IMG/VR virus record: IMGVR_UViG_3300046692_000091
Location: 186,001-250,000 of that record
Reading direction: 5' to 3' (one strand)
Length of the DNA: 64,000 nucleotides
Part shown: positions 2,991 through 21,519 of the stretch, one piece after another
Layout: each line of letters begins with the position of its first letter
How positions within the stretch are numbered: position 1 is the first letter of the stretch
Notes under the pieces: model-generated
Told to the model about the DNA's origin: nothing
Databases searched by the model: none
What the model saw: the letters and a program-made list of their open reading frames with translations, nothing else
Translations under genes and position numbers: made by a program

Positions 2991-3410
2991 ATGCGTTACA
3001 ATAGCCCGTCAAAGCAGAAGTTTACTTTACTCGGTTGGACCATGGGTTGGATCGAATGGCTCATCTTGTTCGGTGTGTTGGCGTACGGAGTTTATGATCA
3101 CTTCGATAAAAAGCCCCCACCACTCACAACTGTTCAAGAAGTCGAATCCGTCTTCTTAGGTAGTGATGATGATAATACAAAGTCTGTTGACGTCTGGTTG
3201 ATGAAATACCAACTGGATTTCGATCGAGCTGATAAGGAATACCAGGATGGCCGGGATCTGCGATTCTTTAAGCATTCCTTTCTGAAGAAGTGTCTTACGG
3301 AAGTGGCGGAGAAGAATGGACCACGTCTATCAGATGCCTGGGTAAGAGAGTGTCTGGAAAAAGCAGACCGTGAAGCATTCGCTGCTCAAGAATACTGGAA
3401 GAAGAAATGA
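2991..3410 (+). CDS. hypothetical membrane-anchored protein
   Basis: SD AGGAG; N-terminal TM segment. Confidence 0.75.
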   Translation: MRYNSPSKQKFTLLGWTMGWIEWLILFGVLAYGVYDHFDKKPPPLTTVQEVESVFLGSDDDNTKSVDVWLMKYQLDFDRADKEYQDGRDLRFFKHSFLKKCLTEVAEKNGPRLSDAWVRECLEKADREAFAAQEYWKKK

Positions 3411-3727
3411 AGAAGCTAAGATGGATACAGCTTGGTATGATCGTAGGCGTGGTATTAATCGCCGCCGGTGTATTTGGCCTTGTGCAGCAAAAGAAAGACA
3501 AGGCCGAGGAGCTCCAAGAATGGATAGCTGAAAATGTCTATCCTGTACTGAAGATTCGTAATCTGCTTACTACCCAATGTACCCTGCAATGGGAACTAGG
3601 TCACTTACGTGAAGTGGGTGGACGTTGGGAACCTGGTGTAGCTCCTGATGATGTCAAAGCCCGTTGTGCAAGCGATGCTGCCAAGGCCGCCCCTCTTCCT
3701 GTTTATACGGACAGCAATAATGAATGA
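3407..3727 (+). CDS. hypothetical membrane-anchored protein
   Basis: ATGA-coupled; N-terminal TM segment. Confidence 0.75.
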   Translation: MKKLRWIQLGMIVGVVLIAAGVFGLVQQKKDKAEELQEWIAENVYPVLKIRNLLTTQCTLQWELGHLREVGGRWEPGVAPDDVKARCASDAAKAAPLPVYTDSNNE

Positions 3728-4052: not shown

Positions 4053-4730
4053 ATGGACCAAGTTAAGAGTAACTTTGAAATCGCACGTGGTATCGTTCGT
4101 CGCTACATGGCAAACTTCACTGATTCAACTACTCCACCAAAACTGGTGAAAGGTGGTTTCTTTGCTATGATCGCCTCGGATACTGGGGAGGTCTGGCTTG
4201 GGGAAGCTCAGTCCTTCGCAGCAACTATCACGCGTTTCAGAGCTACTACTGGAAAGCAGATTGCTGATTGCATGGCGCAAGCTAAGCTGCGTGGGGCTAA
4301 GTTAGAACTGTGGCTGTTGACACAACCAACTCGCTTCTCTGCACAGGAGTTGGAAAATGAGCTGTATGAGTGTGACCTGTTGGCTGGACGGAAACGTCCT
4401 AACCGTGAAGGCGCAGGTGAGTTGCTGGTGGTTCGCCATCGTCGCTCGCTGAACTACTTCGTGGTATCCAATCGTCAGGAATCGACGCACGAGTCTGTGC
4501 TATCGCGTTTCCTGTACCGGTTGAATCAAACTGGTGGTGATGTGCACAACAAACGGTTGTCTGATTTCATTACCGAGAACGTTGAGGATGTATTGAATCA
4601 ACGCGGTTTTGATATTACGTTTGTTGCACACTTTGTGGACAATGAAGATCTTTGGTTGAAGCGGCAGGTTTATATCGACGAGTGTCAATCAGGCGAATGC
4701 TTGAACCACCGTAATGTTGACCTGGTTTAA
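4053..4730 (+). CDS. hypothetical protein, possible degenerate GIY-YIG-like fold
   Basis: SD AAGGAG; GGFFAMIASDTGEVWLGE resembles a GIY...GKVYIG pattern; catalytic residues not clear. Confidence 0.5.
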   Translation: MDQVKSNFEIARGIVRRYMANFTDSTTPPKLVKGGFFAMIASDTGEVWLGEAQSFAATITRFRATTGKQIADCMAQAKLRGAKLELWLLTQPTRFSAQELENELYECDLLAGRKRPNREGAGELLVVRHRRSLNYFVVSNRQESTHESVLSRFLYRLNQTGGDVHNKRLSDFITENVEDVLNQRGFDITFVAHFVDNEDLWLKRQVYIDECQSGECLNHRNVDLV

Positions 4731-4806
4731 TTATACTCTCCTTTATTATCTGGTGAGCAAATGCTTCCACAAAAGAAATCCCAAATGTCCAAAAGGTTCA
4801 ATCATC

Positions 4807-5457
4807 ATGAGTGCACACATTGTAGAGATCCATGACCATATCAAAATCCTATTAAAGCGTATTGAAAATTATACGTCAAACCGGCAGTATGGTGAGGGGA
4901 ACATTCCTCACCTGTGCATTAAAGTAAAACACAACAATGGCTTTGCCTGGTTTGGTGTTCACATCCTGGAAGCACCAACCATCAACTGGCCTGTAGAAAT
5001 ACGGGACCAGATTGAGAAAGAAATTCGTGATGGTCTTGATAAGATCTGCGATGTCCAGGAACTGGTTACTGATATGCCTCGTCTGATGGATTCCATCTCT
5101 GACGTGGTAAGTTCACGCAAGCGCCCAACTATCTTTGGTGGGCAAGGCAACGATCTACTGCAACTCCACATGGACGGTAATGTTCAACTCGATATGTATC
5201 GGGATCATCGGAATGGCGATACGCTTTCCTATGGTGGGTTTGAAGGAGAGATTCTGTTGAATGGTCGTTGGTATCCATTCTTCATGTATCACCGTGGGGT
5301 CATCCTGTATAACTACATCGATGCTACTGTAGCTACGGCTATGATCACTCGTGCACTGACTCGTCAGTTCCCTGAGATCTTCGATGAAGACGAACCAGAC
5401 TTCGTACAAGTTGATCACAGTATCGATCGTACTCGGAATAAACGTAAGGAGCTCTGA
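4807..5457 (+). CDS. hypothetical protein
   Basis: Long ORF (track 4714..5457); likely ATG 4807. Confidence 0.75.
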   Translation: MSAHIVEIHDHIKILLKRIENYTSNRQYGEGNIPHLCIKVKHNNGFAWFGVHILEAPTINWPVEIRDQIEKEIRDGLDKICDVQELVTDMPRLMDSISDVVSSRKRPTIFGGQGNDLLQLHMDGNVQLDMYRDHRNGDTLSYGGFEGEILLNGRWYPFFMYHRGVILYNYIDATVATAMITRALTRQFPEIFDEDEPDFVQVDHSIDRTRNKRKEL

Positions 5458-14245: not shown

Positions 14246-15130
14246 TTATTTCAGGAAAGTACCACAACTTGCTTGTACATCAGTACCAACGCGAGGAATT
14301 AGTTTTACACGTGCATTGGGTAATCGGCGTTTGATGTAACGATGTAAGTAATCGATATGGCCTTCTACTGGTTCACGAGAGTAATGCCCTTCTGGTGGAT
14401 TGTACCGAACGATGTTCCAATTAACCTCTAACTGATATCCATCGATCACATCCAGGATAGCTTTAACATCAGCAAGGTTATCATTTTCATGTTCAATGAA
14501 AGCGTAGTGGATCTTCGGAACTTTGCCTGTGTGCAGCTGCCAGTCTTTGAGGATTGCGAATGCATCTCGTGGGTAACCCGCTTTAGGTAACCAACGTTTA
14601 CGAAACCGATCATTCAATGAGTAGACCGAATAATAAATCTCGGGGTATACCTCTGGATCAGTGAACACCGATTCAAGTGACCGGCGACTAAACTCTTCTG
14701 GCATGATAGTAGATATCAGGAACTTTGATTCAAGTCCATATCTGGCTGCACGTTTCTTTAAGCCACGCAAGATCTCATCGGCATTACTTAGAAAGATCTT
14801 ATTAGCTAAAGGTTCGCCTCGTGCCATGAAGTTGAAATGGACCATCTTAGCTGGATGCTTGTCGGCATAGTATCGTAGGACTTCATCTGCTTGCTGCCAG
14901 AATTCTTCAATCGTGGTATCACGTAGTTTATTCTGACCTGTTGCAGTTAACCAGCACATCCGGCAAGCTTGCTTACAACCTGTCTGAGACGACAAGTAAA
15001 CAATGAAGTAGTCATCAACCCGACGTACATATCGTGCCTCTAGCATCCCTGGGTGATCTTCAAAGCGGTGTTCGAAGTTTACTGATTGATCGAGTTGGGA
15101 TACATGTTGTTTAAAGATTAGATTATCCAT
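14246..15130 (-). CDS. RlmN/Cfr-like radical SAM protein
   Basis: SSQTGCKQACRMC (CxxxCxxC), FMARGEPLAN (MGMGEP-like), C-terminal ASCG. Confidence 0.85.
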   Translation of the reverse strand: MDNLIFKQHVSQLDQSVNFEHRFEDHPGMLEARYVRRVDDYFIVYLSSQTGCKQACRMCWLTATGQNKLRDTTIEEFWQQADEVLRYYADKHPAKMVHFNFMARGEPLANKIFLSNADEILRGLKKRAARYGLESKFLISTIMPEEFSRRSLESVFTDPEVYPEIYYSVYSLNDRFRKRWLPKAGYPRDAFAILKDWQLHTGKVPKIHYAFIEHENDNLADVKAILDVIDGYQLEVNWNIVRYNPPEGHYSREPVEGHIDYLHRYIKRRLPNARVKLIPRVGTDVQASCGTFLK

Positions 15131-15516
15131 TAGCTAATAGTCCCTATTTGCCATCCATCCAGACGTAGTGAGATATAACCTTTTCGACCTTCTTCTACAT
15201 ACACTGCAGTTGGTTCATATGCCCGGTAAGCTTTTTGTCGATCGGTAAACCCATTACGAATATCATGCATTGCCATTTCTAATTTGGAACACATTTGTAG
15301 CGTGCTATATGCGCTGTCTCCACGCATGTCATTGAAATATGGCTGTAGTGCTGATCCATAAGCAACTACGGCTTCATTGATTGGTTGTGGACCTTTGTAC
15401 CGGGTTAGCTCAGCTTCATAGGCATCGAACGCTGCTGTCTGTTTACGTCTAGCTATGCCTTGGTTAAGTCGTTCAACCACTGCTCGTTCGCGTGGCCGAA
15501 ATCTGTTTGGGCGCAT
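15130..15516 (-). CDS. hypothetical protein
   Basis: SD AAAGGA; TAATG-coupled to the radical SAM gene. Confidence 0.7.
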   Translation of the reverse strand: MRPNRFRPRERAVVERLNQGIARRKQTAAFDAYEAELTRYKGPQPINEAVVAYGSALQPYFNDMRGDSAYSTLQMCSKLEMAMHDIRNGFTDRQKAYRAYEPTAVYVEEGRKGYISLRLDGWQIGTIS

Positions 15517-15540
15517 TGTATATTCCTTTTGTATGATTGC

Positions 15541-15570
15541 GGGCATAAAGGCTATCCCGAAGGATAACCC
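15541..15570 (-). terminator. hairpin terminator-like element after tRNA cluster
   Basis: Minus strand GGTTATCC-TTCG-GGATAGCC-TTTATGCCC; the G-U pair forms only on the minus strand. Confidence 0.75.
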
Positions 15571-15595
15571 AATGCGAGGGGCTCTAAGGCCAATA

Positions 15596-15671
<76 letters not shown>

Positions 15672-15676
15672 TAATT

Positions 15677-15765
15677 TGGCGGAAGCATAGAGATTCGAAC
15701 TCTAGGGGCTGTTACACCCGACGGTTTTCAAGACCGTTGCCTTAAGCCATCTCGGCCATGCTTCC
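15677..15765 (-). tRNA. tRNA-Ser(TGA)
   Basis: Class II cloverleaf with long variable arm; loop CT-TGA-AA; CCA. Confidence 0.95.
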
Positions 15766-15780
15766 TGTGTTGCTTTTGTA

Positions 15781-15866
15781 TGGTGCGGACAGAGAGACTC
15801 GAACTCTCACGCCCTAAGGGCGCTGGAACCTAAATCCAGTGCGTCTACCAATTCCGCCATGTCCGC
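15781..15866 (-). tRNA. tRNA-Leu(TAG)
   Basis: Class II cloverleaf; CTGGA-TTTAGGT-TCCAG; CCA. Confidence 0.95.
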
Positions 15867-15868
15867 TG

Positions 15869-15890
15869 TATATTATTACACACCAAGTAT
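15869..15890 (-). promoter_or_regulatory. putative ncRNA-associated promoter motif
   Basis: ATACT-tggtgt-GTAATAATATA ends 2 nt before tRNA-Leu position 1. Confidence 0.7.
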
Positions 15891-15897
15891 TTTTTTA

Positions 15898-16629
15898 TTA
15901 GACTACGCTGGGGGTGTAATTATTGGTGTAACGCACGTAGTTACTAATTCTTACATTACCTAGGTAACGAGGAACGTTATTAGCGTTGCTGTTTAGAGCA
16001 CCTAGGTATAACGTAGACAAGTTAGCGAAGTTACTAGCTGGTCCACTCTGGAAGAAACCAGATAATGTTCCACCTGAAACTCCAGGCTGCATGTCTTGTA
16101 GTACGCCGTTAATATAGAATCTTAGGCGGCGATTAGTATCGCAGGTCATTGCGTATTTAGTGACTATATTCGTAAAGGTGTTGAAGGTAACTGCCGGGTA
16201 ACGACACTCTGACTTCGCTCCACTGTTGCTGTTATCAGAGAACATCAATAGATTACCATAACCGGCATCACCAAAGCGCATGGTGAAACCTTTGAGTAAT
16301 GACGAATCTGTCATATAGAATTCGTTTGTCCAAGCCGTAGCATTACCTGGGCGAAGTTCTGACCACTCGATTGTCCAATTGGTACTAGACAAATCCAAGA
16401 GTGGGTTGAAAGCCATGAATAAACGCGAACCACTACCACCAGCTGTAGGCATAGATAGGGTTGGTTTATTATCAATTAGTGTTGTGTTACTCACCACTGC
16501 GCCAGCGGATATTGTGATGGGTCTATTACTAACAGTCTCGGTCACTGTGGCCATGTCAATATACAGGATCACATCACCTGTTTCTGGCGGGACCGAGCTC
16601 GAACTTGGTGATAGTAGTAATTCATACAT
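15898..16629 (-). CDS. LamG/concanavalin A-like lectin-fold protein, probably virion-associated
   Basis: LDLSSTNWTIEW and GNVRISNYVRYTNNYTP signatures; paralog of 18676..19395. Confidence 0.7.
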   Translation of the reverse strand: MYELLLSPSSSSVPPETGDVILYIDMATVTETVSNRPITISAGAVVSNTTLIDNKPTLSMPTAGGSGSRLFMAFNPLLDLSSTNWTIEWSELRPGNATAWTNEFYMTDSSLLKGFTMRFGDAGYGNLLMFSDNSNSGAKSECRYPAVTFNTFTNIVTKYAMTCDTNRRLRFYINGVLQDMQPGVSGGTLSGFFQSGPASNFANLSTLYLGALNSNANNVPRYLGNVRISNYVRYTNNYTPSVV

Positions 16630-16692
16630 GTTGATTATCCTGGTTATATAAACATATAATTAGGTGATAGTCAAAATCCCCTTTGCATAATA

Positions 16693-16725
16693 CAGCATAA
16701 AGCTTCCCCAAAGGGAAGCACTATG
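16693..16725 (-). terminator. hairpin terminator-like element
   Basis: GCATAAA-GCTTCCC-CAAA-GGGAAGC-ACTATG on + strand, just downstream of tRNA-Leu(TAA). Confidence 0.75.
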
Positions 16726-16727
16726 TT

Positions 16728-16814
16728 TGGTGCGGGGAGCGGGATTCGAACCCAGCGAGCCTGTACAGGCGGCGGCTTTTAAGGCCGCTATGTATTCCGC
16801 TCCATCATCCCCGC
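16728..16814 (-). tRNA. tRNA-Leu(TAA)
   Basis: GCGGC-CTTAAAA-GCCGC anticodon arm; variable arm; TTCGAAT T-loop; CCA. Confidence 0.92.
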
Positions 16815-16827
16815 GTGTAACTAAATT

Positions 16828-17668
16828 CGGTCCCAGCATCCAGGATTCAAGCCCTGGTTATCAACGAACACGGGGTCGTTGGTAGATCGCCGCTGGGCGA
16901 GCTTTTCATCCCAATGTACAGCTTGAGCTGGTCGCGGCATTCCGCTAGAGGTCAAACCGTTCCGAAGGGTCTATCTACTTACTCGCCTTACAACGCTTCA
17001 GAGTGATGGAGGGCAAGTAAAAGAATCGGGGTAACCCACTATTCCCTTGGCAGCGGTCATGGTTTAAGATGACTTGCGGAATAGCTCGTTACATGGGTGC
17101 ACTATAGCGTACACGTCGCTGCCTTTCGGCCTTCTCATCGATTACCAGCCGCAGCTAGTTCTCTGTGTATGGCCCAGTAGCCTCTTTACGGGAGTCATCT
17201 ACTGGGAAGGTTACCACTACAGGACTATCACCTTCTATGGCCTGGTATTCCAACCAGTTCATGTAACCAAGACGGACATCTGATCCGTTGCAGCCGAGTC
17301 GTAACGCTTCTTCGGTATGGCGCCTTAGTAGTCAGGACTATCTGACCTTTGGGGTATCATGAGTACGGGCTTCGAGTTTCCCTGATATTCCACTATTCTA
17401 GTCTTTTGTGGAACGTCATTGGGTATCATTCGTAGATCTATACAAGTGTAACTCTGTGCCCTAGTCTGAGGATTAATCAGACACCTGTATTGATCCGAGC
17501 CTATCCCTTCCAGGCTAGGTCTTCACACTCCCACTTCTGGGGGAATGCGTATGTAAAAGTTTGATGGAACGATCCTCTACCTTCATCTATTCGGACTTAG
17601 GCGACCTTTTCAGCACAGTGGGGTGGAGTGCACTTACCCAACATCCTACCATGTCTTTCACATGCTCT
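16828..17668 (-). ncRNA. putative ~850-nt highly structured ncRNA
   Basis: No credible ORF; more than 10 visible helices, a GAAA tetraloop, a repeated loop motif; G-U pairs favour the minus strand. Boundaries approximate. Confidence 0.7.
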
Positions 17669-18343
17669 TTATTCGTGCGTAGTAGACAGCTCAGAGATAA
17701 TGCAGATCGAACCATCTTCAACCGGAGTGGTATCGGAGTAATCAACCTGATTGTAAACACCACCATGGAACTGGAAGGTTTCATATTTCCACGAACTATC
17801 TAGCTTCAGCACTGGGCAGACTGACTTACGACCTTGGCAAAGCACTGACGCCGATACGGAACCAGCAGCTGTGACATGTAAGCTAATCTTGAATGGTACA
17901 CCCAATGGAACGTCTTCTATTAGTGTAAAGTTGTTTATTAGTGCGTCATCGAAGTTAGCTCGGAAACCAGCTGTGATCTTCCCTTTATTCCAGAAGACTT
18001 TCAGTGGCGGAGTTGTAGCATCTTTGACATGGACTTGTGCAATTACCACTTTCTTAGCCGAGTTGACTTTAGTAACAGTCATCTCTTGGCGAGACCAGTG
18101 ATGTGCTGCGCTAGTAAGAGACCAATAAGCTGGTTCTTTCCATTCACAGCGTGTGCGATGTGTACTTTTGCTGGACGCCCCTAATGTGGGCGCAGAGAGT
18201 TGAATAGAACCGTCTTCCAATTGACTGACCACTTCTGGACATCTTACCAAGGCTTCCGAACCGAGGAGCTCCAATGCAACCGGATTCTCATCAGAGACCG
18301 GTAATGGAGTAGCAATCAAATAGTTACTGATATCAACGAACAT
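17669..18343 (-). CDS. polysaccharide lyase family 7 (alginate lyase-like)
   Basis: RTRCEWKE (RxExR-like), IAQVH (QIH-like) and FHGGVYNQ (YFKAGxYxQ-like) in the PL7 order. Confidence 0.85.
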   Translation of the reverse strand: MFVDISNYLIATPLPVSDENPVALELLGSEALVRCPEVVSQLEDGSIQLSAPTLGASSKSTHRTRCEWKEPAYWSLTSAAHHWSRQEMTVTKVNSAKKVVIAQVHVKDATTPPLKVFWNKGKITAGFRANFDDALINNFTLIEDVPLGVPFKISLHVTAAGSVSASVLCQGRKSVCPVLKLDSSWKYETFQFHGGVYNQVDYSDTTPVEDGSICIISELSTTHE

Positions 18344-18361
18344 TTTAACTCTCTTTTGAAA

Positions 18362-18437
18362 TGGCGGGCATCCAGGGAGTCGAACCCCGAACCGACGGAT
18401 TTGGAATCCGTTACTCTGCCAATTGAGCTAGACACCC
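18362..18437 (-). tRNA. tRNA-Trp(CCA)
   Basis: ACGGA-TTCCAAA-TCCGT anticodon arm; G73; CCA. Confidence 0.93.
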
Positions 18438-18444
18438 GAATGAA

Positions 18445-18528
18445 GAAAGGGAACAGGAATCGAACCTGCGTTTCCGGCTTGGTACTTATGGTGGCCACCG
18501 GTGTCCTAGGCCGCTAGACGACCCCTCT
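18445..18528 (-). ncRNA. tRNA-like RNA (Glu-type body) with 18-nt anticodon loop
   Basis: AGAGGGG-TC-GTCT-AGCGGCCT-AGGAC-A-CCGGT-[18 nt]-GCCGG-AAAC-GCAGG-TTCGATT-CCTGT-TCCCTTT-C; no CCA. Confidence 0.7.
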
Positions 18529-18675: not shown

Positions 18676-19395
18676 TTACAACTCTAGTGGGCCAGGAGTA
18701 TAGTTACGTGTATATCTAGCGAAGTTACTAAGTCGAACTCTACCGTGATGCCCAGGAACAGCACGTACCGAACTACCGTTCGAATCACCAAATATAAGCG
18801 AGGTGATATTGATCAGTGCTGTTGGTGTAATCGTTTGCATAATGTAGGTTCCATTAGCTGCACCCTTAGCCAATGGGAGTCTCTGTCCATTACGGTAAAT
18901 AAAGATCTGACCATTCTTACATACAAATGCCCATCTACTCAAATTACTAACTAAGGCAGCTTTAGTGAATTGGGTATTATAACAATCGGCTGGTGCAGAG
19001 GCTGTGTTATCCCCCAAATGGAGTCTGTCTAAGAAACCAGAGTCACCATACCTGAAGAATAGTCCACGGCCAGCTGTTGAACTAGTCATTGAAAATTCAA
19101 GGGCATAGGCAGTAGGGGCGGTGTCGTTTATAGATGACCATTCTAATGTCCAGTTTATTGCACTTAAGTTGAGAGGGGCTGCAAATGTCATCACCTGTTT
19201 AGCTGCAACCGTTGGGTATTGCATACTGCCTTGCCCATCGATTAAATACCCAGCGTCAGCTATTGCTCCACCGGTATTGTTGGTGACGGTACCTAACCCA
19301 GATAGATCGGTGGCGGTAACTGGATCATACAAGAATAACACATCCCCTGTGTCCTCCACTGGTAAACTACCCCCAGCTAATAATGCCTCATACAT
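18676..19395 (-). CDS. LamG/concanavalin A-like lectin-fold protein, probably virion-associated
   Basis: LNLSAINWTLEW and GRVRLSNFARYTRNYTP; paralog of 15898..16629. Confidence 0.7.
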   Translation of the reverse strand: MYEALLAGGSLPVEDTGDVLFLYDPVTATDLSGLGTVTNNTGGAIADAGYLIDGQGSMQYPTVAAKQVMTFAAPLNLSAINWTLEWSSINDTAPTAYALEFSMTSSTAGRGLFFRYGDSGFLDRLHLGDNTASAPADCYNTQFTKAALVSNLSRWAFVCKNGQIFIYRNGQRLPLAKGAANGTYIMQTITPTALINITSLIFGDSNGSSVRAVPGHHGRVRLSNFARYTRNYTPGPLEL

Positions 19396-21439: not shown

Positions 21440-21519
21440 ACGCCCCTACCGGATTTGAACCGATGACCGATCAACGTATGGTTACCGTCGATTGCTCTAC
21501 CTAGCTGAGCTAAGGGGCG
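21440..21519 (-). ncRNA. tRNA-like RNA (Ile2/Met-type body) with 7-bp anticodon stem and 9-nt loop
   Basis: CGCCCCT-TA-GCTC-AGCTAGGTA-GAGC-A-ATCGACG-GTAACCATA-CGTTGAT-CGGTC-ATCGG-TTCAAAT-CCGGT-AGGGGCG-T; no CCA. Confidence 0.75.

Follow-up and report, generated by a model that had tools for sequence, protein, structure and literature searches.

A structured RNA family preceding tRNA-Leu in Pseudomonas jumbo phages includes a module resembling the uL4/uL24-binding site of 23S rRNA

The 854-base gene-free stretch located in front of a tRNA-Leu(UAA) gene on a 314,814-bp viral contig encodes a conserved, structured non-coding RNA. It belongs to a previously undescribed family that is restricted, as far as searched, to Pseudomonas jumbo phages of the Psa21/Phabio/D6/RVTF4 group, with reduced relatives in 201phi2-1-like phages. 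The RNA is built of modules that occur separately in relatives, and one of them resembles the three-way junction formed by helices H18, H19, and H20 of 23S rRNA. Coordinates are given in the window, which is the whole 64,000-nucleotide stretch of DNA that was analyzed (Table 1). Loci denoted by L and a number are homologues or more distant relatives of the RNA identified in the searches.

The stretch is ORF-poor, with 15-19 stops per frame on the minus strand and 9-13 on the plus strand, and the longest stop-free run is 71 codons. It is positioned between an alginate-lyase ORF and tRNA-Leu(UAA), the latter identified by ARAGORN and Rfam and located inside an 11-tRNA cluster. The original prediction listed a series of helices and a repeated 10-mer on the minus strand, and all of these motifs are present there. 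The 10-mer GATAGTCCTG occurs exactly twice in the whole window. Single-sequence folding of the stretch is only modestly better than that of shuffled sequences (z = -2.9 on the minus strand and -2.2 on the plus strand, 20 shuffles), and the decisive support for the structure is comparative. Most of the originally listed helices covary. The GAAGGT/ACCTTC pairing is probably not the conserved one, since it competes with a three-way-junction fold supported by D6 and RVTF4, which have no ACCTTC partner.

Table 1. Positions of the RNA, its structural elements, and the flanking features in the window
Feature	Position	Strand	Description
Upstream ORF	17669-18343		Alginate lyase
Complete RNA-encoding stretch	16815-17668	-	854 nt
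Leader hairpin	17650-17664	-	CAUGU-GAAAGA-CAUG (CATGT/ACATG), directly after the stop codon of the upstream ORF
5' domain	17271-17648	-	About 380 nt
Helix A	17611-17648	-
Helix B	17571-17606	-
Helix B2	17525-17548	-
Helix C	17500-17519	-
AGCCT/AGGCT	17498-17516	-
Helix D	17464-17482	-
TCTGA/TCAGA	17465-17481	-
Helix E	17367-17461	-	Multi-helix
E-F core	17326-17465	-	Conserved core of the 5' domain
Hairpin E3	17384-17417	-
Kissing-loop partner 1	17399-17403	-	GACUA in the apical loop of hairpin E3
Helix F	17330-17347	-
GTCAG/CTGAC	17331-17346	-
10-mer, first copy	17333-17342	-	GATAGTCCTG
Kissing-loop partner 2	17336-17340	-	UAGUC in the loop of hairpin F
Helix G	17294-17315	-
Helix H	17272-17288	-
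23S rRNA-like module	17209-17268	-	Closing stem GGUUAC/GUAACC; H19-like CUGGU-UGGAAUA-CCAG; H20-like AGG-UGAUAGU-CCU
CTGGT/ACCAG	17242-17257	-
10-mer, second copy	17220-17229	-	GATAGTCCTG, in the H20-like hairpin
GAAGGT/ACCTTC	17206-17235	-	Alternative pairing
Variable linker	17032-17208	-	Lineage-specific, three hairpins
Linker hairpin	17173-17206	-	CCCAGTAG/CTACTGGG
Linker hairpin	17118-17155	-	GCTGC/GCAGC around GCC-GAAA-GGC
Linker hairpin	17039-17084	-	CTATTCC/GGAATAG around GTCAT/ATGAC
3' domain	16824-17031	-	About 200 nt
Hairpin of the 3' domain	16979-17020	-	TTACTTGCC/GGCGAGTAA
C-rich loop motif	16995-17013	-	CCCUCCAUC-N3-CUGAAGC, apical loop of the 16979-17020 hairpin
Long-range helix	16882-16978	-	GUAGAU/AUCUAC
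Terminal hairpin	16862-16881	-
Terminal hairpin	16840-16857	-
tRNA-Leu(UAA)	16728-16814	-	Abuts the 3' end of the RNA with no spacer
Terminator-like hairpin and U-tract	16702-16719	-	Probable end of the transcription unit, consensus scan only

About 12 homologues of the RNA exist, several of them closely related, and all are in Pseudomonas jumbo phages (Psa21, D6, RVTF4, Phabio, and IMG/VR contigs). Direct abutment to tRNA-Leu(UAA) is found in every homologue that has a 3' end, even though the tRNA-Leu sequence type itself has been swapped between phages. A scan of metagenomes added only one true homologue, L153, and the 3' motif has 0 hits in 185,579 species genomes. No protein partner is conserved nearby. 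The alginate lyase (PF08787, E=6.5e-39) is present in only some relatives, the upstream ORFs of L069 and L059 are unrelated, and other neighbors are LamG-like paralogues.

The 5' domain (nhmmer E=3.6e-110) has a consensus fold of -48.6 kcal/mol, calculated by Alifold from 10 sequences, against -15.8±4.0 for column shuffles, and contains 24 compensatory pairs against 5.4±2.4 (maximum 12). The 3' domain (nhmmer E=1.4e-60) has a consensus fold of -17.7 against -7.7±2.9, and contains 13 compensatory pairs against 0.7±0.8 (maximum 3). The consensus folds are better on the strand that encodes the tRNA than on the opposite strand, where they reach -31.4 for the 5' domain and -14.9 for the 3' domain. 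In helix B, GGUC pairs with GAUC, as supported by L110, rather than with GACC. The leader hairpin, which may or may not belong to the mature RNA, is kept in L043 and replaced by a different 5' extension in D6, L051, L110, RVTF4, and L055.

The E-F core is the part of the 5' domain retained in the most distant relatives. A covariance model of the core scores 151.9 bits in the window and also finds L059 (68.8 bits, E=2e-15) and Viktualia (25.9 bits, E=1.8e-4), which were not used to build it. In the core alignment, 95.1% of cells are paired, against 78.7% in shuffles and 29-48% in slid controls, and 16 of 26 pairs change on both sides, which 0 of 500 shuffles reach. The apical loop of hairpin E3 pairs with the loop of hairpin F. 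All five positions of this kissing interaction covary across four versions, GACUA/UAGUC, GAUCA/UGAUC (L110, RVTF4, and L055), AGUCG/CGACU (L059), and CAUCG/CGAUG (Viktualia), and 12 of 12 sequences keep five Watson-Crick pairs. The two copies of the 10-mer have different explanations: one is a kissing-loop partner, whereas the other is the H20-like loop of the 23S rRNA-like module.

The variable linker is absent from D6 and L110 and differs in Psa21, L051, and RVTF4. Its hairpin stems covary between the window and L043 or RVTF4, as judged by eye. The C-rich loop motif of the 3' domain is identical in all 10 members that have this domain. The same loop, sometimes as CCUUCC, is located in hairpins with different, covarying stems in the short tRNA-linked RNAs of L059, L006, L069, 201phi2-1 (short RNA at 302416-302633), and Viktualia. 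The 3' domain is the only part of the RNA present in Phabio.

The inserted module between the 5' domain and the linker has the layout of the H18(top)-H19-H20 junction of 23S rRNA. In E. coli, the corresponding nucleotides 281-359 are the primary binding site of uL4 and uL24 (PMC6426284). The orthologous module of L043 matches the Rfam bacterial LSU model at positions 330-384 (37.7 bits, E=2.3e-8), and that of RVTF4 matches the archaeal LSU model (E=6e-4). The window copy itself gives no LSU hit at E<=1, but is near-identical to widespread bacterial 23S sequence across the junction and the H20 loop. A 23-nt pattern taken from the module has more than 120 exact matches in bacterial genomes, where about 0.3 are expected by our estimate, and the one match compared with E. 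coli rRNA lies in a 23S gene. A blastn comparison with those loci gives 88% over 43 nt, for the window copy, and 96.6% over 29 nt, and no other part of the RNA hits. D6, L043, and E. coli 23S 286-354 all fold as the same junction, whereas the minimum-energy fold of the window copy prefers the alternative GAAGGU/ACCUUC pairing. The closing stem, compared among the window, D6, and RVTF4, and the H19-like stem differ in sequence from 23S rRNA and covary, and the H19 loop is UGGAAUA rather than UGGAAAG. The module is absent from Psa21, L110, L051, L069, and Phabio, and so it cannot provide the core function of the family.

A derivation of the whole RNA from rRNA is rejected, except for the module. 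The stretch shares more 8-mers with E. coli 23S rRNA (67) than any of 288 other pieces of the window (36.6±7.8); however, 16S pieces share about 50 with 23S, and the similarity is thus partly generic. Several blastn hits to E. coli rRNA with E≈2 are not collinear, and a comparison with 120 diverse rRNA operons hits only the module.

Sequences related to the RNA are present in wastewater RNA-seq libraries, which suggests that it is expressed. A 553-nt contig related to the 5' domain and a 284-nt contig related to the 3' domain have equally high depths of 1718 and 1727, whereas longer contigs carrying flanking sequence have depths of 30-207, and the ORFs flanking the RNA in the window have a depth of 0. 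These contigs come from relatives that are 80-90% identical, and the metagenomic libraries may contain DNA. In 201phi2-1, tRNA-Leu is driven by a middle promoter, and an sRNA lies immediately upstream of the tRNA (PMC11512511). A scan for sigma-70 promoters was uninformative, with fewer sites than in shuffles.

We consider it more likely than not that the stretch gives rise to a stable RNA that is transcribed together with the phage tRNAs and accumulates to high abundance, like GOLLD and ROOL. Its 3' end may be produced when RNase P cuts the 5' end of tRNA-Leu, and its 5' end by tRNA 3' processing or endonuclease cleavage. Our best guess for its function is a scaffold or decoy that engages the host translation apparatus. 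Binding of uL24 and/or uL4 by the 23S rRNA-like module is a tentative part of this proposal, and pairing of the invariant CCCUCC loop with purine-rich, Shine-Dalgarno-like sequences is more doubtful still. There is precedent for non-ribosomal RNAs that bind ribosomal proteins, as r-protein operon leaders appear to mimic rRNA sites, and OLE RNA is associated with bS21 (PMC12054373), although these are cellular regulatory or stress RNAs. A large phage-encoded RNA carrying the uL4/uL24 site was not found in the literature searched.

It is possible that the stretch contains two or three independent RNAs in tandem, the 5' core, the rRNA-like module with the linker, and the 3' domain, each released by processing and having its own role. 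L069 has only the 5' domain before tRNA-Leu, the core of L059 is followed by its own terminator, and 201phi2-1, L006, and L059 carry the CCCUCC hairpin in a separate RNA of about 230 nt that ends in a terminator. Furthermore, the 5' and 3' parts assemble as separate contigs in the RNA-seq libraries. However, the two contigs have the same depth within each library (1718 and 1727; 640-694 and 579), as expected for one molecule, and the break falls in the variable linker, where the assembly of mixed strains would break anyway. No terminator or tRNA separates the parts in the window. Nevertheless, a single indivisible RNA of about 850 nt is not demonstrated.

Another reading, which we regard as unlikely but not excluded, is that the RNA forms a homo-multimeric cage or ring held together by kissing loops, like GOLLD or ROOL, or is even a very divergent member of one of those families. 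The original prediction proposed a GOLLD-like RNA or a new class, and the latter is supported. The RNA resembles GOLLD in its size (700-850 nt, against about 800 nt), its location next to tRNA genes in a phage, its layout of a conserved 3' region, a variable linker, and a separate 5' part, and its covarying kissing loops. In ROOL and GOLLD, such kissing loops were first read as tertiary contacts and turned out to be intermolecular bridges, and the kissing interaction described here could similarly be either intramolecular or intermolecular. Membership of GOLLD or ROOL is not supported, because Rfam 15, which should include models of both, gave no such match at gathering score in the window or at E<=10 in positions 16600-18500 and in six homologous loci, although no known GOLLD or ROOL sequence was run as a positive control. 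The hosts also differ, as GOLLD occurs in Lactobacillales or marine prophages and the RNA described here in lytic Pseudomonas jumbo phages, and the 5' core is the part best conserved across clades. The 5' and 3' parts of ROOL are intertwined, whereas here they are separable, and their occurrence alone in some phages does not fit one obligatory cage subunit.

Equally speculative is the possibility that a nucleus-forming jumbo phage produces the RNA in abundance to capture uL24 and uL4, the two earliest 50S assembly proteins, either to shut down new host ribosome assembly or to build a phage-specific ribonucleoprotein or multimeric RNA particle, held by the kissing loops, that acts on translation. 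If so, it would be the first phage-encoded rRNA decoy for ribosomal proteins and a third, unrelated class of giant tRNA-linked phage RNA.

It is improbable that the RNA is a cis-acting leader serving the folding, processing, or export of the tRNA-Leu precursor. The invariant adjacency to tRNA-Leu(UAA) is consistent with this role, as is the retention of the G/H hairpins (GCUGCAACGGAYYAG..UCCGUC) directly upstream of tRNA-Leu in the distant clade of 201phi2-1, L069, and Viktualia. However, 700-850 nt with about 100 conserved base pairs is far more than any known tRNA leader, the 3' motif also occurs away from tRNA-Leu, and contigs of the RNA reach only about 22 nt into the tRNA at high depth, which suggests that the RNA persists on its own.

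A group I or group II intron or another ribozyme is very unlikely. The Rfam searches gave only weak hits to group-II-D1D4-4 (13.9-16.6 bits against a cut-off of 49, E=0.32-1.6), caused by the GGUGAnAGUCC motif, and no group I or group II domain V/VI match at E<=10. The R/S-like motifs noticed by eye (CAGACUAGGGC and AGAUAGUCC) are explained by the kissing hairpin loops and the H20-like loop. Homing HNH genes lie nearby in Psa21 and D6, but the RNA lies between complete genes, without flanking exons. A decayed gene, a 3' UTR of the upstream ORF, which precedes the region in the window, Psa21, and L055, or a captured rRNA fragment is contradicted by the excess of compensatory changes, the stops in all frames, the presence of the RNA without the ORF in D6, L051, L110, and RVTF4, and the restriction of rRNA similarity to 50-60 of 854 nt.

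The RNA lacks the enrichment in GGA motifs of a CsrA/RsmA sponge similar to RsmY/RsmZ, as it contains 16 GGA motifs against 16.1 expected from its composition, and the motif is not enriched in any family member. Non-tRNA stable RNAs are also encoded in the tRNA cluster of phage T4 (RNAs C and D, about 120-140 nt), and phage K has lncRNAs next to tRNA genes. The family described here occurs in cultured, genetically tractable Pseudomonas phages, and the relatives with only the 5' core, only the 3' domain, or with and without the rRNA-like module constitute a natural deletion series. The module provides the first directly testable biochemical hypothesis for a large tRNA-linked phage RNA of this type. 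Several deposited genomes leave the region blank or place small hypothetical CDSs on it.

The stretch lies on the minus strand between an ORF of 224 amino acids and the gene for tRNA-Leu(UAA), inside a cluster of 11 tRNA genes that are all on that strand. Every inverted repeat listed in the original prediction, which had proposed a densely base-paired RNA free of ORFs, is present at its stated position, and the 10-mer GATAGTCCTG occurs exactly twice in the 64-kb window. All six frames are broken by 9-19 stops, and the longest stop-free run is 71 codons. The folding of the single sequence gives only a modest signal, with z=-2.9 on the minus strand and -2.2 on the plus strand relative to 20 shuffles. 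Therefore, the single sequence does not prove an RNA, whereas the comparative data do.

The window is part of IMG/VR contig 3300046692_000091, which has a length of 314,814 bp and comes from a rhizosphere metagenome. BLAST and motif scans identified the stretch in the Pseudomonas phages Psa21 (Tepukevirus), D6, RVTF4, and Phabio (Phabiovirus), in the IMG/VR contigs designated L043, L051 (identical to L044 and L024), L110, L055, L019, and L069, and in the metagenome contig L153. In every case the RNA ends at, or within about 45 nt of, tRNA-Leu(UAA), and it mostly begins after tRNA-Trp, sometimes with tRNA-Ser in between. The upstream ORF, identified by Pfam as an alginate lyase (PL7, PF08787, E=6.5e-39), is positioned between tRNA-Trp and the RNA only in the window, Psa21, and L055, and is absent from D6, L051, L110, and RVTF4. 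Paralogous ORFs of about 240 amino acids with a weak ConA/LamG-like signal flank the tRNA units, and several paralogues occur at the same loci in D6, RVTF4, and Psa21. No neighboring protein is consistently associated with the RNA. The 3' motif has no match in one genome each of 185,579 bacterial and archaeal species. In D6 and Psa21, a remnant resembling the 5' half of a tRNA-Leu (GCCGGAGUGGUGAAAUUGG...), of the RVTF4 tRNA-Leu type, is located between the large RNA and the intact, differently sequenced tRNA-Leu(UAA), which suggests that the tRNA gene was replaced by recombination. HNH endonuclease genes lie just downstream.

Coordinates of the RNA, its parts, and associated features
Feature	Sequence	Coordinates	Strand
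Radical-SAM ORF	window	14246-15130	minus
ConA/LamG-like ORF	window	15898-16629	minus
Terminator-like hairpin	window	16702-16719	
tRNA-Leu(UAA)	window	16728-16814	minus
Whole stretch	window	16815-17668	minus
3' domain	window	16824-17031	minus
First hairpin of the 3' domain	window	16979-17020	minus
Variable linker with three lineage-specific hairpins	window	17032-17208	minus
Inserted three-way-junction module	window	17209-17268	minus
5' domain, helices A to H	window	17271-17648	minus
E-F core of the 5' domain	window	17326-17465	minus
Leader hairpin	window	17650-17664	minus
Alginate-lyase ORF	window	17669-18343	minus
Match to the tRNA model with insertion	window	18445-18528	minus
ConA/LamG-like ORF	window	18676-19395	minus
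tRNA called Thr(GGU)	window	21440-21519	minus
tRNA called Ile, counterpart of the previous	L043	10219-10292	
Tandem partial duplicate of the 5' domain	L043	6272-6377	minus
tRNA-Leu remnant	L002 (D6)	about 3095-3139	
tRNA-Leu remnant	L001 (Psa21)	about 3386-3431	
Separate RNA with the C-rich loop	L158 (201phi2-1)	5001-5266	
Separate RNA with the C-rich loop	L059	about 830-1050	
Separate RNA with the C-rich loop	L006		
Separate RNA with the C-rich loop	L069	3540-3750	
Separate RNA with the C-rich loop	L159 (Viktualia)	4500-4940	

The RNA is structured and is located on the tRNA strand. The RNAalifold consensus energy of the 5' domain, calculated from 10 sequences, is -48.6 kcal/mol, compared to -15.8±4.0 for column-shuffled alignments and -31.4 for the opposite strand. 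The corresponding values for the 3' domain are -17.7 kcal/mol, -7.7±2.9, and -14.9. Compensatory changes were found in 24 pairs of the 5' domain, compared to 5.4±2.4 (maximum 12) in shuffles, and in 13 pairs of the 3' domain, compared to 0.7±0.8 (maximum 3). A covariance model of the E-F core recovers two relatives that were not used to build it, L059 (68.8 bits), a member of a second clade of phages described below, and phage Viktualia (25.9 bits, E=1.8e-4), and finds only one copy in the window. In the model-fitted alignment of 12 sequences, 95.1% of cells are standard pairs, in contrast to 78.7% in shuffles and 29-48% when the partners are slid. Furthermore, 16 of 26 pairs change on both sides, which none of 500 shuffles reaches.

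The loops of hairpins E3 and F form five Watson-Crick pairs in all 12 sequences, and they do so through four different sequence versions: GACUA/UAGUC, GAUCA/UGAUC, AGUCG/CGACU, and CAUCG/CGAUG. This kissing interaction explains one copy of the 10-mer. The first hairpin of the 3' domain presents the invariant loop CCCUCCAUC-N3-CUGAAGC. In D6, L051, L110, RVTF4, and L055, where no ORF precedes the RNA, the 60-75 nt before the 5' domain form a conserved 5' extension, composed of a small hairpin followed by GCAAGUCCYCUGGYCUAACCCGCCWUGGGCA, with signs of covariation. The window and L043 lack this extension.

The RNA is modular. Phabio has only the 3' domain, whereas L069 has only the 5' domain, with tRNA-Leu 23 nt later. 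D6 and L110 lack most of the linker, and L043 has a tandem partial duplicate of the first ~100 nt of the 5' domain directly upstream of the full copy (nhmmer E=5e-9). A second clade of ~320-kb phages comprises L059, L006, L069, 201phi2-1, and Viktualia. In these, the C-rich loop motif, CC(C/U)UCCAUC..CUGAAGC, is located in a hairpin with a different stem, in a separate conserved RNA downstream of a tRNA, sometimes with a small ORF in between. The copies read to their 3' end (L059, L006, L069, 201phi2-1, and Viktualia) finish in an intrinsic terminator, and the RNA is about 230 nt long in L059, L006, and 201phi2-1 but longer in Viktualia. It is unannotated in 201phi2-1 and overlaid by small hypothetical CDSs in Viktualia. 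A reduced 5' core, or only hairpins G and H, precedes tRNA-Leu in this clade. Therefore, the 854 nt may be one RNA or a tandem of independently functional RNAs.

The inserted three-way-junction module resembles 23S rRNA. Weak hits to the group-II-D1D4-4 model and a local LSU rRNA hit pointed to the motif GGUGAnAGUCC. The L043 orthologue of the module matches the bacterial LSU model at positions 330-384 (37.7 bits, E=2.3e-8), and that of RVTF4 matches the archaeal LSU model (E=6e-4). RVTF4 aligns to E. coli 23S 298-339 at 76% (E=4e-5), and the window and L043 copies align to the same place. However, the copy in the window gives no LSU hit at E<=1, and its minimum-energy fold uses the alternative GAAGGU/ACCUUC pairing. 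A 23-nt pattern taken from the module has more than 120 exact matches in bacterial genomes, whereas by our estimate about 0.3 are expected by chance, and the one hit compared with E. coli rRNA (locus L227) falls in a 23S gene at the expected position. Against those 120 rRNA loci, only RNA positions 409-457 (window 17212-17260) hit, with 88% over 43 nt and 96.6% over 29 nt, and nothing else in any family member hits. The closing stem covaries, with GGUUAC/GUAACC in the window, GAGUUACAC/GUGUGACUC in D6, and CUUACGUGA/UCACGU(G)AAG in RVTF4, and the H19-like stem covaries as well. D6, L043, and E. coli 23S 286-354 fold into the same junction. E. coli 23S 281-359 (H18/H19/H20) is the primary binding site of uL4 and of the assembly initiator uL24 (PMC6426284). 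The module is missing from Psa21, L110, L051, L069, and Phabio.

Contigs from wastewater RNA-seq were compared with positions 15500-18500 of the window at 80% likeness or more. In run X14, a 5'-domain contig of 553 nt has a depth of 1718 and a 3'-domain contig of 284 nt has a depth of 1727. In run X15, the depths are 640-694 for the 5' domain and 579 for the 3' domain. Longer contigs that include flanking sequence have depths of 30-207, and the flanking ORFs of the window have a depth of 0. This suggests, but does not prove, an abundant, stable RNA in relatives, because the data are contigs, the libraries may contain DNA, and the sequences are from relatives rather than from this phage. In run X10, a very high summed depth of about 15,700 at window 17217-17317 comes from many short contigs with unrelated flanks, which are probably rRNAs of other organisms matching the 23S-like module. 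In 201phi2-1, tRNA-Leu is transcribed from a middle promoter, and an sRNA lies immediately upstream of the tRNA (PMC11512511).

We infer that the RNA is co-transcribed with the tRNAs, released by RNase P at the 5' end of tRNA-Leu, and accumulates as a stable RNA. We hypothesize that it engages the translation apparatus. It is possible, although doubtful, that the rRNA-like module binds uL24 or uL4, and it is less likely still that the C-rich loop, which resembles an anti-Shine-Dalgarno core, pairs with purine-rich sequences. The kiss may be an intermolecular bridge, as in ROOL and GOLLD. Besides the tandem of independent RNAs, a GOLLD- or ROOL-like cage and, less probably, a cis-acting tRNA leader were considered as alternatives. 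A ribozyme and non-functional sequence are highly unlikely. By context, size, and layout, the RNA is most like GOLLD and ROOL; however, membership in these families, and in group I or II introns, is not supported by searches with the Rfam models. The genome papers on Psa21, D6, and Phabio, the 201phi2-1 transcriptome paper, and searches for large phage RNAs or rRNA mimics gave no description of this RNA. We consider it a new family among the large tRNA-linked phage RNAs, and its embedded ribosomal-protein site is, as far as we could find, unprecedented.

Right next to tRNA-Trp, the Rfam tRNA model matches (36.1 bits) a sequence with a ~20-nt insertion in the anticodon-arm region, which was not called by ARAGORN and may be an intron-containing or degenerate tRNA. 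An 80-nt tRNA that ARAGORN calls Thr(GGU) aligns to the tRNA model with 12 nt where the anticodon loop should have 6, whereas its counterpart in L043 is 74 nt long and is called Ile, and the anticodon assignment is doubtful. A radical-SAM ORF lies next to the tRNA cluster, and its Psa21 counterpart is annotated as rRNA large subunit methyltransferase N (RlmN-like), an enzyme family that acts on 23S rRNA and tRNA.
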